From: Amoeboaphelidium protococcarum X5
Lineage: Eukaryota; Fungi; Aphelidiomycota
Direction of reading: 5' to 3'
Assembly (NCBI GenBank): GCA_023515725.1
Contig: JALDTO010000158.1
Span: 310,001 to 374,000 of the forward strand
Length of the DNA: 64,000 bases
Shown: piece after piece, positions 52,536-63,209 of the stretch
Layout of the letters: the number at the start of each line of letters is the position of its first letter
Numbering within the stretch: position 1 is the stretch's first letter
Position numbers and translations under genes: made by a program
The notes under the pieces: model-generated
The model's database searches: none
What the model was told of the DNA's origin: nothing
What the model saw: only the letters and a program-made list of their open reading frames with translations

Positions 52536-52955
52536 TTTGATATGTTTAACTGATATTCAATCTATTAGATAATTATTAAACTCATTCAGGTTGAAGAAAG
52601 TAAAAAGGGAAGGTTTGATCTGATCTTACTTGGCAACAACAACAACGCAATCACACTCATTCCAATCCATTCGAGCAGACGGAAACGAAATGTATACTAA
52701 AATCTCACGTACTTAAGAATAGACAGAAGTTGATACAATCTTTGGGTGCAGTGATAATACTTCAATAATTTAACGCTTTCCAGGATCACGTTCTGACAGC
52801 TTGATAACTTGTGCTGTTCATTAATTCCTAAATCTGTTTAAGATTAGTAGACTTTAGATTCAAAACTTTCTCTATACCATTCTAATAGAAAGTTATTAGT
52901 CTCGCCACCAAAAAGTAGAGCCAAGTATTAATTTTAAACATCCAGAGTAATAAAA

Positions 52956-53027
52956 AGGCGTTACTCGGATTCGAACCGAGGTTATGCGAGTTAGAGTCGC
53001 GTGTCCTTACCACTAGACGATAACGCA
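52956..53027 (-). tRNA. tRNA with CUA anticodon (reads UAG), probably tRNA-Gln(CUA)
   Basis: Cloverleaf TGCGTTA TC GTCT AGTGGTAA GGAC A CGCGA CT-CTA-AC TCGCA TAAC CTCGG TTCGAAT CCGAG TAACGCC T, followed by a T-run terminator; anticodon at 52992-52994. Confidence 0.9.
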
Positions 53028-53603
53028 TTTTACACAGTAAATACATGAAAATTGAGCCATTGATTGTATATGTATCCAAAGCATCTGTGGTATTATGAAA
53101 ATAAACGATCAAACAAAAGTCTACTTGGATCCCCATCCAAGTGCGGTAAAAATTCAAAATATTTAAATACAATATGTATCATTAGTTTTTGTTAACATTG
53201 GAAATGCTTTTCATAAGTCTTAAGTGTACATACAAAGATTGCTTGGGGTCGCTTTAAGAAACATTACTCATATACGCTAGCCATGTCCCTCTGTCTGGGC
53301 CTTTCATTTAGTCCATCCAAGGCTCAGAACTATTTACAGAACGCAAAGACCATATTCCGCTCAGTCCAGCACAACTATGCTTGATTTATTTCCATTGCGA
53401 TACAACGAACGTGTTTTAAATGACAATTGTTTGCAAATTAATGATATAACTTCTGACAAAAGTAATGTATTCATGAATTGAGATTGATGTCAAGATCACG
53501 GCGCTTAAATCGCGTCTTCTACCAGCTGCCAATCAAAGGAATCTTAACGGCATTTTTGTTGCTGAACTGCCGGAATATATTCAATAAAACTCTTCACTTT
53601 CAT

Positions 53604-53901
53604 TTTAACTTAGGACAGATTATATACACAATAGGAACAGACAGGAAGTTATATACAAGGACTAGGAGTCAAGCAGAGACACTAACAGAAATACGGGAAG
53701 ATAAAATATGTTAATAAGATAAATACTCTAATTAACACGTTAAGTGGAAGAAATCAATGTTCATAAGAGGCGCGCATATATACTGCAGATACTTGCCTAT
53801 TCGAGATCTAATTGATGAAAGAGGCGCGCACTTGAAACAATGTTGATCATCTAAGCCCCATAGAGTCTTCTGTTGATACTTGATCGACGCGTGTGCTAAC
53901 A
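53604..53901 (-). repeat. 3' LTR
   Basis: Identical by eye to 58706-59003; preceded by the PPT on the minus strand. Confidence 0.95.
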
Positions 53902-56900
53902 CTACCCCCCTCTCTAAATGGCAGCTGATTCACAGAACTCCTTGAAGATCCATCATAAAAGTAGTCCTTATTCTTTTCAGTAGCTGCCAGAAAAGGAGCA
54001 AGATCTCTTTCATTAACTGTAGCATCAAATCGTGTTCCATCAGGTGACATCAACCAGTAAGTACCGGGAAATCCAACGTCGACAACATGATATGGTCCCT
54101 TCCAATCGAACTCAAACTTATTCATGCTATGATGCTTTAATTTGACCCAATCACCAATCTTGAAGTAATATTCTGGAGCATTCGGATCAAGATTGTGACG
54201 TCTTCTCATACTTTCAGCCTAAGTCTTAGATCTCTCATATGCAGCAGCTCTGGAATCTCCCATAGCTTCAAAAGTTCTTGCCATAATTTCTCCTTTCTCC
54301 TCAAGTTATTCAATCTCATCCAACGGCTGCAAAGTGCACTCAGGAGGACGTGAATCACCTAGTAAACGAGGCTCCACACCATAAAGCATGTAGAATGGTG
54401 ACTTCTTGGTCACTGCATGAGTTCGACAGCGTATTCCAAACAAAGCCTGCTTCAGATACTCGTCCCATCTTTCCGGACGCCCATTAGTTAAAGTAGTTAT
54501 CGCGTGATTGAGCATAGAATGCATTCTCTCTACCATACCATTAGTTTAAGGGTGATAAGGTGCAGTAGCAATTGGTCTAACGCCTTGCATTCTTTCATAT
54601 TTCGCTATACCATCAGCTAAGAATGACTTCGCTCTATCAGACAAGATCTCATAAGGTGCACCGTAATTCATAAAGATATCATTGTAGAGGAAATCTGCAA
54701 CAGTATCAGAATCTCTAAACTTCACAGCTTTAGCAACCACCCAACGAGTAGCGTAATCAATGGCGGTAATGATGTGATTATTACCAGATTTAGTCGTTTA
54801 CAGATCCTGAACAAAGTCGATACCCCATCTCTCGAATGGGAGGGCAACGGGAGGAATAGGACGCAGAGGAGTCTATTACGTGAACTAATTCTTGGAAGCA
54901 TCAAGTTAGCATTGCGCACACTCTTTAATATACTACTTGATGTCGGCATGCATGTCAGGCCACCAGAAACGGCGTTCAATGAGATCAACTATGGAATCAT
55001 ACTTAAAATGACCAAGCCCATCATGGAATCGAGCTATATGAGCATCTCTATCAGACTTCAGCAAGTAAGGTCTCTTCGATCTATTATCAGCCAGAATTCT
55101 GTGCAACTTTCCATGCACCATGATGAAATGTTGACACTCTTACTTACATTTGTCCAATATGTCACTAGATACATCCAGCCATTCGTCCGTCAACAGGCAA
55201 TGCGCAATTACCAGAGGCCAGTCATGCTCTTCATCAAATTCCTTATTGAGCACATTACTTCTGATCAGCTGACATTACAGATCTTGGTCAAAGGATATGG
55301 AAAACAGATCCAACTCTTACGGAGTCACAAACTTTGAAGGATCTAACAAGCATCTGAAATTGTACTTCTCTTCGTCAACCGCATAATCTGAGCGTCTAGA
55401 GAGCAGATCAGCCTTACCATTTCTGGCACCAGGACGATGTGTCAAGACAAAATCAAATTCAGAGAAGAATAGAGACCATCGCGCCTATCTCCTTGTCAGT
55501 TGCTTTGTGGTCATAAAATATTGCAAACTCTTATGATCAGTCAAGACTGTTACTTGATGCTTACCACCTTGCAGAAAGTGGCGCCATTCTTTGAAGCATT
55601 GATGAATTGCCAGTAATTCCTTGTCATAGATCTCATAATTACGCTCAGCAGGATTGAGTTATCTTGAATAGAAGGCGACAGGTTTGAACTCTCCAGAGTC
55701 AGACTACTAAGACAATACACCAGCAATGCCATAATCAGACGCATCTGCTTCGACCACGAAAGGCTTCTCTTCATCCGGATGACTTAGTACAATATTACTA
55801 TTAAACATCTTCTTTAGTGAATCAAATGCATGCTACTTCTCAGCATCCCAAGTAAAAGCAACATCCTTCTTCAGTAGTTAAGTCAGAGGACGCGTCAGAT
55901 CTGCAAAGTGCGGAATAAATTTACGGTAGAAATTCACAAAGCCGTGGAACATCATCACATCCTTTACATTCTTTGGCGTTGGCCATTGAGTAACAGCTTC
56001 GACTTTTCTAGGATCCATGAGAATGCCATCTTTAGAAAGAATATAACCTAGGAAAGACGTGGAGGATTACGCAAACTTGCACTTTGACAGTTTGCAGTAG
56101 AGCTTGTTACAACGGAGAATCTACAAAACTTCGCGTACATGTTACCAATGTTCCTCTTCATCACCATCAGTATATACAACAATGTCATCCAGATACACCA
56201 CAACAAATTTGCCAATCTAATTCTTAAACAGATCATTCATGAATGTTTGAAATTAAGCAGGAGCGTTAGCCAATCCAAAGGGCATCACCAGAAATTCGTA
56301 CTAGCCATACTTGGTGAGAAATGCGGTTTTAGCTTCATGACCAGCTTTGACACGCAAAAGCTCAAAGGCACCATCCAGGTCCAATGCAGTAAACAACTTT
56401 CCTTTTTAAAGAGAGCGGAATAGATCAGAAATGTTAGGTAGAGGATTCCGATTCTTGATAGTGATCTTGTTCAGACCGCGATAGTCCATGCAGAGACGCA
56501 ACTTGGAATCCTATGTCCACTCAGCCTTACGGACGAAGAAGCAGGGAGCACCATATGGTGATTAACTCTTGCGAATAAATCCACGATCCACATTCTTCTA
56601 CAGCCAGTCGCGCATGACAGCATCTTCTTCCTAAGTCAGTTTGTACAACTTACCAACAGGAGGTTTAGCCCCAGGCTCTAAATCTATAGTGCAGTCTTAT
56701 TCACGATGAGGTGGAAGCTCATTCAGCTGTTGCTTCATAAATACATCGCCAAACTCTTGTATCTGGTCAGGAAGAACAGGATCACTTATTTCAGTATCCT
56801 TTTACATTAAGCAAATCTACTCTTGAATGATATCTGATAGGCAATGATAATTTATGATTCCATCTTCATCCTCATAGACAAATCCTGGAATTATGGTATT

Positions 56901-57725
56901 CTCTTCGTCCTTCTAATACATGTCTAATACAGTGGCATTAATGCAAACAAGAGGCGGAGTAGAGATGGAGTCAGAAACAGAAGTAGAAGCGTTAATAGTA
57001 GTAGACTCAGTTAAAGTAACAGGCAGAGTAGAGACAGAGGCAGAGTTAGAATCAGAAACAGAATCAACAACAGTAGAAACAGAGACATGTTCGGAGACAG
57101 AGACAGACTTATTATCAGCAACAGTAGAAACAGAGACATGGTCGGAGACAGAGACAGACTTATGATCAGCAACAGTAGAAACAGAGACGTGATCGGAGAC
57201 AGAGACAGACTTATGATCAGCAGAGACAGAAAGATCACTAACGGAACTGGACTAGAGGTCTGATACTTAATCGGGCTACAATGATATTAACTCCGGCGAG
57301 GTTACGCAATTAGTTAAACAGTACTATGAACCAAATTTTACAGTCACAGCTGACCAATCAATATCAGGATTATGCATTCTTAACCATGAGAAACCAATAA
57401 TTCCCTTTTGAGCAAGTTTTATAACGTAGAATGTGACCGTCTCAATATGATTAGCTATATGCATTTACAGCGGAACAGTTTGATGAGTAATAAAGGTCTT
57501 AGTATTACGGTCACCATCAGCAAAGGATACACAGACTTTACGCTTGCATTTCACTACAGGAATTTCGAACTCGGCCACTAAACTTTCATCTAAAAAGCAA
57601 CTATCAGCGCCTGAATCTAAAAGCATAGGGACAGAAATTTCTTTAGCTCCATATTTTAAGACTGTGGGAAGGATCATTTTAGTAGAGACCTCATAATTCA
57701 GACTTAAAATATATTTCTCAGTTAG
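53847..57725 (-). CDS. Retrotransposon Pol (protease, RT, RNase H, integrase), in frame with Gag
   Basis: LLDSGA; [13 protein letters not shown]; ADASD..YDKELLA..TDHKSL; HHCC, WGIDF..SDRA..NGMVER; GPY motif; stop TGA lies inside the 3' LTR. Confidence 0.93.
57060..57235. repeat. 51-bp tandem repeat (about 3.4 copies) encoding a 17-aa Ser/Val-rich repeat in the PR-RT linker
   Basis: AGCAACAGTAGAAACAGAGAC(A/G)TG.TCGGAGACAGAGACAGACTTAT(G/T)ATC repeats; peptide [17 protein letters not shown]. Confidence 0.9.
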
Positions 57726-58685
57726 TCATCCTTAAGTACGAGTATTCAATAACGAGCAATTAGCCTTGATATGACCAGAGCCACCACAATATAGACACAG
57801 TCTCTAAGACAAACGACGCTGACGCTCCTCTGCGGACAACGGCCCACGCTTAACTTGATCAATATCCATATTATCTGGATTAGGAGGGCCAGGAGTAGAG
57901 GCAGACGAATTGGTAGAAGCAGAGGCCGACTAAGTGGAGGAAGACCTGACAGATGAATACTACTTCTTAGAGTAGTTACTACCACCGCTTAAAGCTTTCA
58001 TGTCAGCAACTCGTTCACCACAACGGATTGCAAGTTTCACCAGATCACTTAGTGTACTAGGCTCATCAGAGGACAACATCATTATGCGTACATCATTGTT
58101 AAGTCCTTCTTTAAATTCGGACTTCAGCGAGATATCATTCCACCCTATTCCAGACGACAGGAATCTAAACTCTGCCGCATAGGCGGAAACCGTCATTGAG
58201 CCTTACTTTAGTCTTCTCAGAGCTTTCTCATCGCAGTCTCTTTGGCTAGCTGGACACAACCACTCCTTGAAACACGCGATGAAGGTGTCAAAGGACTTCA
58301 ACTCTTCTTTATACTGAGAGGGATTCTCAATAATAGGGTCGTAGTACTTGCTGGCTTTCTTAGTCAGAAGCGATCCAACAGTCTTAATCTTAATGTCGTC
58401 GGTGGCAAAGGCGTCCGGATGTAACTCAAACATGAGTTAACACTAATTTACAAACGAACGGAACTCCGACACAGATCCATCAAACTTTTCAGGATATATT
58501 ATTTGCTTCTTCTATGAAGTCGGGGCGACCAGAGGTATAGCAGGCGGCACAGCGGTATAAGCAACATGCGTTTACAATTATTGCATTTAATCAGATAAAT
58601 ATTGTATCTGTTACTGGAGTTGTTGATTAATCAACATCAACTGATTAACATCAACGGCAGGAGTTTAGGAACCAGAACCACTCAT
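57726..58685 (-). CDS. Retrotransposon Gag, 319 aa, with CCHC zinc knuckle
   Basis: ATG 58685; PEKFDGS, LKQGSMTVSAYAAEF, CLYCGGSGHIKANC; ends at TGA 57726-57728. Confidence 0.9.
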
Positions 58686-58705
58686 AATATCAGAACGTGT
58701 TAAGT

Positions 58706-59003
58706 TTTAACTTAGGACAGATTATATACACAATAGGAACAGACAGGAAGTTATATACAAGGACTAGGAGTCAAGCAGAGACACTAACAGAAATACGGGA
58801 AGATAAAATATGTTAATAAGATAAATACTCTAATTAACACGTTAAGTGGAAGAAATCAATGTTCATAAGAGGCGCGCATATATACTGCAGATACTTGCCT
58901 ATTCGAGATCTAATTGATGAAAGAGGCGCGCACTTGAAACAATGTTGATCATCTAAGCCCCATAGAGTCTTCTGTTGATACTTGATCGACGCGTGTGCTA
59001 ACA
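58706..59003 (-). repeat. 5' LTR with TATA-like TATATAT near 58878-58884
   Basis: Starts TGTTAGCAC on the minus strand; duplicate of 53604-53901. Confidence 0.95.
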
Positions 59004-59024
59004 TTCATCCAAATACCTCAAAAA

Positions 59025-59098
59025 GGTGCTATGTTCTAATTCGGTTAGGAATAGAGACTCTGACTCTCTCAATCTCGGTTCAAATCCGAGTAGCACCT
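59025..59098 (+). tRNA. tRNA-Gln(CUG)
   Basis: GGTGCTA/TAGCACC acceptor stem, anticodon arm AGAGA CT-CTG-AC TCTCT, T arm CTCGG TTCAAAT CCGAG, U discriminator, TTTTT terminator. Confidence 0.95.
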
Positions 59099-59169
59099 CT
59101 TTTTGGTTTCTATCACAATTTTTGTCACCTAAAATAAGCGTCTCTTTTTGCTTATACACCTCAGTTTAA

Positions 59170-59979
59170 ATGGAAGAGAGCGGGTAATAAAATCCAGTGA
59201 ATGAATGCTGTGTCAGCGGGTATATACACTAAGGCGAACCAAAGGGTGTTGATTCGTAACTTGATGGAATGGATTGTTACATTAGCGGTTCTGAGGGTGG
59301 AGATACAGCATTGTTAATTCTGACAGATGTGTTTGGTCAAAAGTTTGTGAATGTTAGGCTAGTGGCGGACACTCTCGCTGATAAGTTGGGCATTCCAGCA
59401 TACGTGCCTGATATCGTATTGAATGACCCCATGCCGCTTAACGTATTAGGTATGATGGACGAGCAAATTGGATTCTTCAATCAATGTATTCGTGCTATCA
59501 GACTTACATTCTCGCTGCCCAAACTGGCTTATTGGATGTCTACTCATTCACCCGCAAAAGTCACTCCGGTGGTGTAAAGTTTTATTCTCGCTATGCAGTA
59601 AAAAGGCTATACTAAGATTGCTGTGGTGGGGTTCTGTTTTGGTGGTCTTCACGCCGTCACCAGTGTTGGACCAGTGTCTGAGGCTATAAAGTGTATTGTG
59701 TCCACGCATCCAGCTAAATGGAATCATCCTCATGACCTACAATAGGTATAATGTCCACTGTTAGTTTAGTTTCCATCATAAGATTTCTAATGGAGCTCAT
59801 CCGACATGCTATCAGTCAAGGAGATGTTGAATGCGCGCACGAATAATAGTCGTGTTACAACTTACGATGGTGTAGAACACGGTTGGGCTATTCGCGCTAA
59901 TCCTAATAATTAAAAGGCCATGAAGGCATAATAAGACGCGCTTAAGGAAGCTGTTGACTTTATCAAAGAAAGTCTGTGA
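59170..59979 (+). CDS. Dienelactone hydrolase family protein (Aim2-like), 269 aa
   Basis: CCVSGYIH.GEPKG, LTDVFG, VGFCFGG nucleophile elbow, YDGVEHGWAIR. Confidence 0.9.
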
Positions 59980-62864: not shown

Positions 62865-63209
62865 TCACGCACCGCCACCTAAGAAAGACGAGACTATACT
62901 CCCAACGGAAGATCCAATACCTGAATTTGTACCAGTATCAGCGACCGAGCCGATTGACTGGGCTAAACCGCCCCAGTTGCCAGACATGGCGGAGCTTACG
63001 ATACCTTAAATTCCAGAGCTAAGAGCACCACCATTGACGGCTCCACCACCACCTCCACCACCACCAAAGCCACCTAGAAGGCCCCCAAGGCCGCCGCTTT
63101 TAAATGAACCACCACCTTTGCCGCCGAGTAGACCCCCGAGGAAGCCAAATGGCAATGCAAGAGATTATAAAATCAAGATTGATATCAAAACTATGCTTAA
63201 AAATTTCAT
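62865..63209 (-). CDS. Small secreted glycine-rich protein, 114 aa
   Basis: Signal peptide, a GGLLGG-rich segment, then ALSSGIQGIVSSAMSGNWGGLAQSIGSVADTGTNSG. Confidence 0.8.

Follow-up and report, generated by a model that had tools for sequence, protein, structure and literature searches.

A conserved in-frame UGA-C between gag and pol of Ty3/Gypsy retrotransposons in Amoeboaphelidium protococcarum, a host with one stop codon

How does a retrotransposon make Pol when the codon that ends its gag gene is the only terminator of its host, and pol follows in the same frame? The question is raised by a Ty3/Gypsy long terminal repeat (LTR) retrotransposon of 5.4 kb (5401 nt) in the genome of the aphelid Amoeboaphelidium protococcarum X5. 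It occupies positions 53603-59003, minus strand, of the 64,000-nucleotide stretch that we analyzed (contig JALDTO010000158.1, positions 310,001 to 374,000; hereafter the window, whose numbering is used throughout). A first-pass annotation, made from the letters of the window alone, had described gag and pol as joined by an in-frame UGA-CUA and had proposed that the element sets its Gag:Pol ratio with a leaky version of the host's only stop. Comparison with related elements leads us to consider it probable that Pol is made by translational readthrough of UGA-C.

The gag-pol frame and the genetic code of the host

The minus strand from 57740 to 57715 reads ACT TAA GGA TGA CTA ACT GAG, with the TGA at 57728-57726, just as the first-pass annotation had it. 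When UAA and UAG are translated as glutamine, a single frame of 1612 codons extends from the ATG at 58685 to the TGA at 53849-53847; the gag start, the TGA at 57728 and the pol stop at 53849 are in phase, also as had been claimed. This frame contains 51 in-frame TAA or TAG codons (27 and 24, respectively) and one internal TGA. The domains were sought with pieces of the frame that are free of TAA and TAG, each searched separately: a CCHC zinc knuckle lies before the TGA, and protease, RNase H, the integrase zinc domain and the integrase core follow after it, in this order. A YLDD motif is visible in the Pol translation. The parts of the frame on which the argument turns are:

57729-58685, minus strand: gag open reading frame (ORF) of 319 codons, with 13 in-frame TAA/TAG read as Gln
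57756-57797, minus strand: CCHC zinc knuckle CLYCGGSGHIKANC, 9 codons ahead of the gag stop (Pfam zf-CCHC, E=4e-4 on the piece 57735-57803)
57725-57728, minus strand: UGA-C, the proposed leaky stop, with 57728-57726 as the gag terminator and 57725 as the conserved +4 C; present in 12/12 readable junctions
57675-57677, minus strand: ATG 17 codons after the UGA, a candidate alternative start of pol
57609-57617, minus strand: protease active site D-S-G, 37 codons past the UGA (Asp_protease_2 match)
53850-57725, minus strand: pol ORF of 1292 codons in the frame of gag, encoding protease, reverse transcriptase (RT), RNase H and integrase
53847-53849, minus strand: pol terminator TGA, followed by T, within the 3' LTR

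Amoeboaphelidium protococcarum is cited in the literature for the use of UAA and UAG as Gln. Ten long host ORFs of the window, with 8047 codons between them, contain 316 TAA or TAG and no TGA. These two codons make up 53% of the glutamine codons in the host ORFs and 59% in the element, which is fully adapted to the code of its host. A tRNA with the anticodon CUA is encoded at 52955-53028 of the window (minus strand) and one with the anticodon UUA at a second locus (L021:1803-1877). The two are nearly identical to each other, have a T-arm in common with the tRNA-Gln(CUG) at 59025-59099 and are likely the decoders of UAG and UAA as glutamine. The absence of TGA from host ORFs that are rich in TAA and TAG, together with the presence of both these tRNAs, leaves UGA as the only stop of this host, in agreement with the earlier suggestion of a genome with one stop codon. 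The release factor of such a host recognizes only UGA, which leaves the element no alternative terminator and would make its Gag:Pol ratio wholly dependent on how the host handles UGA-C.

Elsewhere in the window two minus-strand frames (63887-62865 and 62864-62106) abut in-frame across one TGA (62865-62867), with an ATG directly after it; this arrangement may represent two tightly packed genes or another in-frame stop.

Conservation of the stop in four lineages

The genome examined comprises 23.6 Mb in 346 contigs, with about 41% G+C, and contains four lineages of such elements, which we call A to D. Lineage A includes the window copy, a second full copy (on C249) that is 99% identical to it and fragments at the ends of contigs. 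Lineage B, for which two overlapping stretches of a single contig were read, is 73% identical to A in the LTR, gag and protease and 91-92% identical in RT and integrase. Lineages C and D were recovered by integrase searches of the genome, and the LTR pairs are 100% identical in each. Gag identity is 71% between A and B, 34% between A and C, 38% between A and D and 55% between C and D, while pol identity among the four ranges from 54 to 84%. Every lineage has an intact gag-pol of 1400-1640 codons with exactly one internal TGA.

The junction is readable in 12 copies, and in all 12 a lone TGA, with C after it, interrupts the common frame of gag and pol:

Lineage A (window, C249, C338): ACT TAA GGA TGA CTA ACT
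Lineage B (C146, C155, C154, C248): ACT CAA GGG TGA CTC TCG
Lineage C (C206, C146): GAG CAA TGA CAG TTA
Lineage D (C207, C192, C263): TAG GAA TGA CGT TTG

A protein alignment places the stop of all four lineages in the same column, beyond the knuckle; the protease D[S/C]G follows 37-43 codons later (the motif is LLDSGAD in A, B and D, and LLDCGAD in C). One TGA per ~1600 codons, found at the same place in four lineages, exceeds what chance would give, and it is not a copy-specific mutation: none of the other intact copies carries a sense codon here. Two remnants reach the region of the junction. A 76-nt fragment on C9 stops short just before the TGA position. A decayed gag fragment on C57 (L050:5664-5833) has TGC at the position of the stop and was set aside as uninformative, its frame being broken by indels and a TGA lying two codons upstream. 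The 5401-nt element was also compared with the Logan contigs of four sequencing runs: contigs of X7 (under a second organism label) and X10 (a freshwater metagenome) cover the TGA, with fewer than 31 letters on one side, and in these the TGA is unchanged and no sense-codon variant was found.

The window copy itself is intact and young, the 299-nt direct repeats that flank it (53603-53901 and 58705-59003) being 100% identical, and it is active or very recently active. Because the LTRs are identical and near-identical copies lie on other contigs, elements that carry the TGA have transposed recently. These facts bear on the possibility that the copies are dead, namely that a single defective ancestor passed on the TGA as a nonsense mutation to copies mobilized in trans. 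The four lineages do descend from one ancestor; however, each of them is otherwise intact in gag and pol with its one internal TGA, their LTR pairs are 100% identical, synonymous change prevails around the stop, and searches of the genome found no stop-less member of the family that could supply Pol. We regard this explanation as extremely improbable.

The sequence on both sides of the stop bears the mark of coding constraint. Of the 86 codons near the stop that align without gaps between lineages A and B, 25 are identical, 37 differ synonymously and 24 non-synonymously, and the three codons that touch the stop all differ synonymously (TAA/CAA, GGA/GGG and CTA/CTC). Because synonymous change dominates, both flanks are read as protein in the gag-pol frame. 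Past the UGA, the motif [IL]-x-[SN]-L-[NT]-S-x-S-[TS]-x-K is common to all four lineages. The +4 base is C in all four, whereas the codon that it opens varies: CUA (Leu), CUC (Leu), CAG (Gln) and CGU (Arg). As the C is constant while the meaning of the codon changes, it is the nucleotide that is kept and not the residue. The conserved part of the putative signal is, by this comparison, UGA-C and not UGA-CUA. The earlier expectation that TGA-CTA is kept among copies has to be narrowed accordingly: TGA-C is found in all 12 junctions, but CUA is confined to lineage A, with CUC, CAG and CGU in its sisters.

The stops of ordinary genes have a different composition. In a sample of 47 non-transposon host ORFs of at least 300 codons, the base after TGA is T in 24, A in 16, C in 4 and G in 3, and the pol stops of the four lineages, all in strong contexts, are TGA-T in three and TGA-G in one. 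Fisher's exact test, calculated by hand, for TGA-C in 4/4 gag stops versus 4/47 host stops gives p ~3e-4, a value in which the shared ancestry of the lineages overstates their independence.

Readthrough and its alternatives

We propose that the full-length RNA would be translated from the gag AUG and that most ribosomes would terminate at the UGA (57728-57726) and so yield Gag. A minority would decode the UGA with a near-cognate tRNA, the +4 C making it a weak terminator. Staying in frame, these ribosomes would go on to translate protease, RT, RNase H and integrase, and the resulting Gag-Pol fusion would be sub-stoichiometric in amount. Of the original claim that a leaky stop sets the Gag:Pol ratio, the shared frame, the use of the sole terminator and the conservation of the stop have held; the readthrough itself, its efficiency and the residue that it inserts are what we infer from comparison of sequences.

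Several points weigh against such readthrough. The agreement of the four lineages reflects maintenance and not four independent origins: since they form one clade, UGA-C arose once. The gag-UGA-pol junction of Candida Tca2, when taken alone, gave no readthrough in Saccharomyces cerevisiae, and a promoter was found at that junction (PMC2194720). Folding of 83 and 150 nt past the stop in the four lineages revealed no 3' structure that is significant or conserved, the 150-nt z-scores being 0.18, 0.65, 0.44 and -0.47; lineage A has an AU-rich hairpin after the stop (z -1.5) that lineage B lacks. The two RNA-labelled runs among those compared hold scattered pieces of the element, and none of these lies over the junction. 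Finally, an in-frame GT..AG segment of 78 nt spans the stop in lineages A and D.

The last point suggests partial splicing, an alternative that the first-pass annotation had also named: a short in-frame intron holding the UGA would be removed from a fraction of the transcripts and thereby give a Gag-Pol mRNA. Partial splicing has reportedly been proposed for the Ogre elements of plants. Here, a GT is found at -11/-12 from the TGA in all four lineages, and the 78-nt segment (-11 to +67) has a pyrimidine-rich end; the corresponding segment in lineage B is 48 nt. Nevertheless, among the many GT..AG pairs that span the stop, no in-frame one has the same ends across all lineages. The interior of the candidate introns is conserved as protein: it includes the motif past the UGA that all four lineages have in common, and the stretch KMILPT shows four synonymous and zero non-synonymous changes between A and B. 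Intron-less copies are absent from the 12 junctions (0/12), and no joint at this site appears in any of the runs compared, of which the X7 and X10 contigs cover the TGA and the RNA-labelled ones miss the junction. The pentamer TGTAG, taken as a candidate intron end, occurs near the junction in lineage A alone, at +170, past the protease active site. The host ORFs of the window are long and mostly uninterrupted, and inspection of four gaps between window ORFs found no introns, these gaps being intergenic DNA. Splicing at the junction is in our estimate quite improbable.

A second alternative is that Pol is translated alone and never as a Gag-Pol fusion, either from the ATG at 57677 or from a sub-genomic transcript that a promoter at the junction would produce. 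The Met codon 17 codons past the UGA is present in both lineages A and B, and in Tca2 the junction was found to hold a promoter (PMC2194720). Lineages C and D, by contrast, lack any AUG in the interval from the UGA to the protease D[S/C]G, which speaks against the start at ATG 57677 that had been entertained at the outset. Furthermore, the 16 codons from the UGA to the ATG are conserved as protein across the lineages, with no indels, and all four maintain a common frame for gag and pol, something that a Pol initiated independently could do without. In Metaviridae and retroviruses Pol is packaged into particles via its Gag moiety, and this too speaks against a Pol made separately. We hold independent translation of Pol to have a low probability.

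The third alternative retains decoding of the UGA and attributes it to a non-canonical bypass, in which a tRNA specialized for UGA, the insertion of selenocysteine or a stimulatory element far from the junction would act. It would fit with the failure to detect a local stimulatory structure and with the apparent need of Tca2 for more than its junction (PMC2194720), and a tRNA with the anticodon UCA may exist beyond the tRNA genes listed for the genome. However, no match to tRNA-Sec was found in the genome, and no selenocysteine insertion sequence (SECIS) at E<=1 in 53400-59200, where Rfam at the same threshold returned the neighboring tRNA only. A general suppressor of UGA would also conflict with the absence of this codon from the 8047 host codons. 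Moreover, literature cited in 10.1101/2022.12.06.519325 has UGA-C by itself yielding measurable readthrough in both fungi and animals. Such a bypass seems unlikely to us, and context-driven readthrough of UGA-C is the reading that we prefer.

Relatives, wider anatomy and known systems

To place the junction in an evolutionary context we turned to relatives elsewhere. The integrase core, searched against 1.84 billion representative proteins, has 5889 relatives, of which the closest full-length ones outside this genome (metagenome and genome contigs L054-L059) have the same domain order and 56-65% identity in the integrase core. Their pol lies in the -1 frame of gag, in all five relatives with DNA and in one more that was judged from gene coordinates. 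Four of them have a canonical slippery heptamer (L055, L056, L057/L058 and L059: G GGA AAC twice, A AAA AAC and T TTA AAT), and a hairpin of 8-11 bp is found at or just past the gag stop in 5/5 relatives with DNA. The gag stops of these five are TAA, TGA, TAG, TAA and TAA. The frameshift cassettes lie at L054:1013-1075, L055:1010-1075, L056:1120-1190, L057:325-400 and L059:1150-1230. The 3' arm of the hairpin in the relatives encodes the Leu-Leu-Thr/Ser motif that sits just past the UGA in the elements of this genome. For lineages A-D themselves, -1 frameshifting was considered and rejected, their pol being in frame 0.

We computed a tree of 31 pol proteins with IQ-TREE (LG+G4, quick search), with support from the Shimodaira-Hasegawa-like approximate likelihood ratio test (SH-aLRT). 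It groups A with B (100) and C with D (100), and the four in one clade (99). The sister of this clade is a -1 frameshifting element (98), and the two are nested within a group of ten (99) consisting of frameshifting elements and one with a fused ORF. On this topology the clade of this genome shares the in-frame UGA as a derived trait, which most simply would have replaced -1 frameshifting once and been maintained since. Because the gag stops of most relatives would be read as sense in this host, we considered a link of this switch to the code of the host, under which TAA and TAG gag stops would have lost their function and termination would be strongly dependent on context, with UGA-C a general weak stop. 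That the host code drove the switch is a tentative idea, which we think rather doubtful. Were UGA-C indeed a general weak stop, the host could use it for C-terminal extensions of its proteins, and the junction would offer a ready natural readout of how faithfully translation terminates in a eukaryote with one stop codon.

The remaining features of the element, and the tRNA gene next to it, are:

58705-59003, minus strand: 5' LTR, 100% identical to 53603-53901; begins TGTTAGC
58834-58843, minus strand: LTR-internal AACGTGTTAA, partner of the primer-binding site (exact 10-nt complement) and presumed 5' end of the transcript
58694-58703, minus strand: primer-binding site (PBS) TTAACACGTT, of the self-priming type, one base past the 5' LTR
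57003-57206, minus strand: four tandem 51-nt units (a 17-amino acid Ser/Val-rich repeat) in the interval between protease and RT
55488-55658, minus strand: RNase H piece, matching PF17917 (RT_RNaseH), E=9e-18
54936-55139, minus strand: integrase zinc-binding (H2C2) piece, matching PF17921 (Integrase_H2C2), E=4e-10
54549-54797, minus strand: integrase catalytic core piece, matching PF00665 (rve), E=1e-8
53902-53916, minus strand: polypurine tract AGAGAGGGGGGTAG, adjoining the 3' LTR
53603-53901, minus strand: 3' LTR, by the direct repeat match
59025-59099, plus strand: tRNA-Gln(CUG) gene (Rfam tRNA, 57 bits; ARAGORN), the presumed integration target

The repeat of 299 nt is probably an LTR of 298 nt plus a base that matches by chance; with an LTR of 298 nt, the element has a 5-bp target-site duplication, ATGAA. 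The last piece of Pol (123 amino acids) has no match to a chromodomain, and there is a weak match to MLVIN_C there; a PDB sequence search with the integrase and RNase H pieces returned nothing at E<=0.001. The array of 51-nt units differs in length between near-identical copies: the copy on C249 has one unit fewer (pol of 1275 versus 1292 amino acids).

The PBS is the exact complement, over 10 nt, of a site within the LTR that lies ~35 nt after a TATA-like box. This pairing is kept in lineages A-D (window, L013, L045 and L047) with compensatory change, TTAACACGTT:AACGTGTTAA in A and B being replaced by TTAACACGAT:ATCGTGTTAA in C and D. It suggests that the PBS pairs with the element's own LTR rather than with a tRNA, i.e. 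a self-primed reverse transcription like that of Tf1. The 5' LTR of the window copy is 21 nt from the 5' end of the tRNA-Gln(CUG) gene. Among the 24 loci scanned, which include both copies and solo LTRs, the 5' end of a tRNA gene faces the LTR at 17, nearly always within ~4-36 nt (tRNA-adjacent loci: L006, L014, L015, L021, L022, L024, L025, L027, L028, L031, L032, L045 and L046). The neighboring tRNA genes at the other loci are of many kinds, among them those for Lys, Gly, Pro, Met, Arg, Asp, Thr and Glu and the tRNA with the anticodon UUA. Insertion upstream of tRNA genes resembles the targeting of Pol III genes by Ty3 and Tj1.

Programmed readthrough of a gag stop is already well known, and we propose no new mechanism. 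What is new is the setting in a one-stop-codon eukaryote, together with a tight clade in which frameshifting appears to have been replaced; the literature searched contained no account of recoding by a retrotransposon in an aphelid or in any other UGA-only host. The four natural variants of the signal (CUA, CUC, CAG and CGU) and the frameshifting relatives form a compact comparative system, which bears on the exchange of one recoding signal for another and on termination context after stop-codon reassignment. For annotation the consequence is practical: gene callers will split or truncate these Gag-Pol genes.

Among known systems, gammaretroviruses have an in-frame gag stop whose low-frequency readthrough gives Gag-Pol. 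In murine leukemia virus (MLV) the stop is UAG, followed by an 8-nt spacer and a pseudoknot. In the element described here, by contrast, the stop is UGA and no significant structure was found downstream. The leaky contexts cited in the literature include UGA-C in Sindbis virus, UGA-CU in fungal and animal peroxisomal isoforms, and UGA-CUAG in mammalian genes (10.1101/2022.12.06.519325). The UGA-CUA of lineage A is like these alphavirus and cellular contexts, but it continues as CUAA and not CUAG, and lineages C and D read CAG and CGU after the stop. The release factor of this host must, moreover, ignore UAA and UAG.

Tca2 of Candida albicans, a Ty1/copia element, is similar in having gag-UGA-pol in one frame. 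It differs in its copia domain order and in a putative 3' pseudoknot (PMC2194720), and it illustrates that simple readthrough driven by context does not necessarily follow from a gag-UGA-pol layout.

The closest parallels are elements of fission yeasts. Tj1 of Schizosaccharomyces japonicus has a gag-TGA-pol organization with no AUG for pol, and removal of its stop abolishes transposition. The sequence GAA-TGA-CT is strictly conserved in Tj1, Tcry1 and Tosmo1-3, which the authors tie to the leaky UGA-C, UGA-CU and UGA-CUAG (10.1101/2022.12.06.519325). The elements of lineages A-D are like these in having one frame split by a single TGA-C, with a Pol that lacks its own AUG in lineages C and D. 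The junction is therefore less unusual among Ty3/Gypsy elements than the first-pass annotation, which had most of them using frameshifting or a single ORF, implied: Tj1, Tcry1 and Tosmo1-3 share the layout. Three traits are common to Tj1 and its kin and to the element of the window: the UGA-C junction, insertion upstream of tRNA genes and a self-priming PBS. Because the nearest sampled relatives of lineages A-D use -1 frameshifting, the likeness may be convergent. Two differences set the systems apart. In place of the GAA-TGA-CT of the fission yeasts, only TGA-C is constant here (GGA-TGA-CTA, GGG-TGA-CTC, CAA-TGA-CAG and GAA-TGA-CGT). And while the fission-yeast hosts use the standard code, in which UAG or UAA would also be possible, UGA is in this host the sole terminator.

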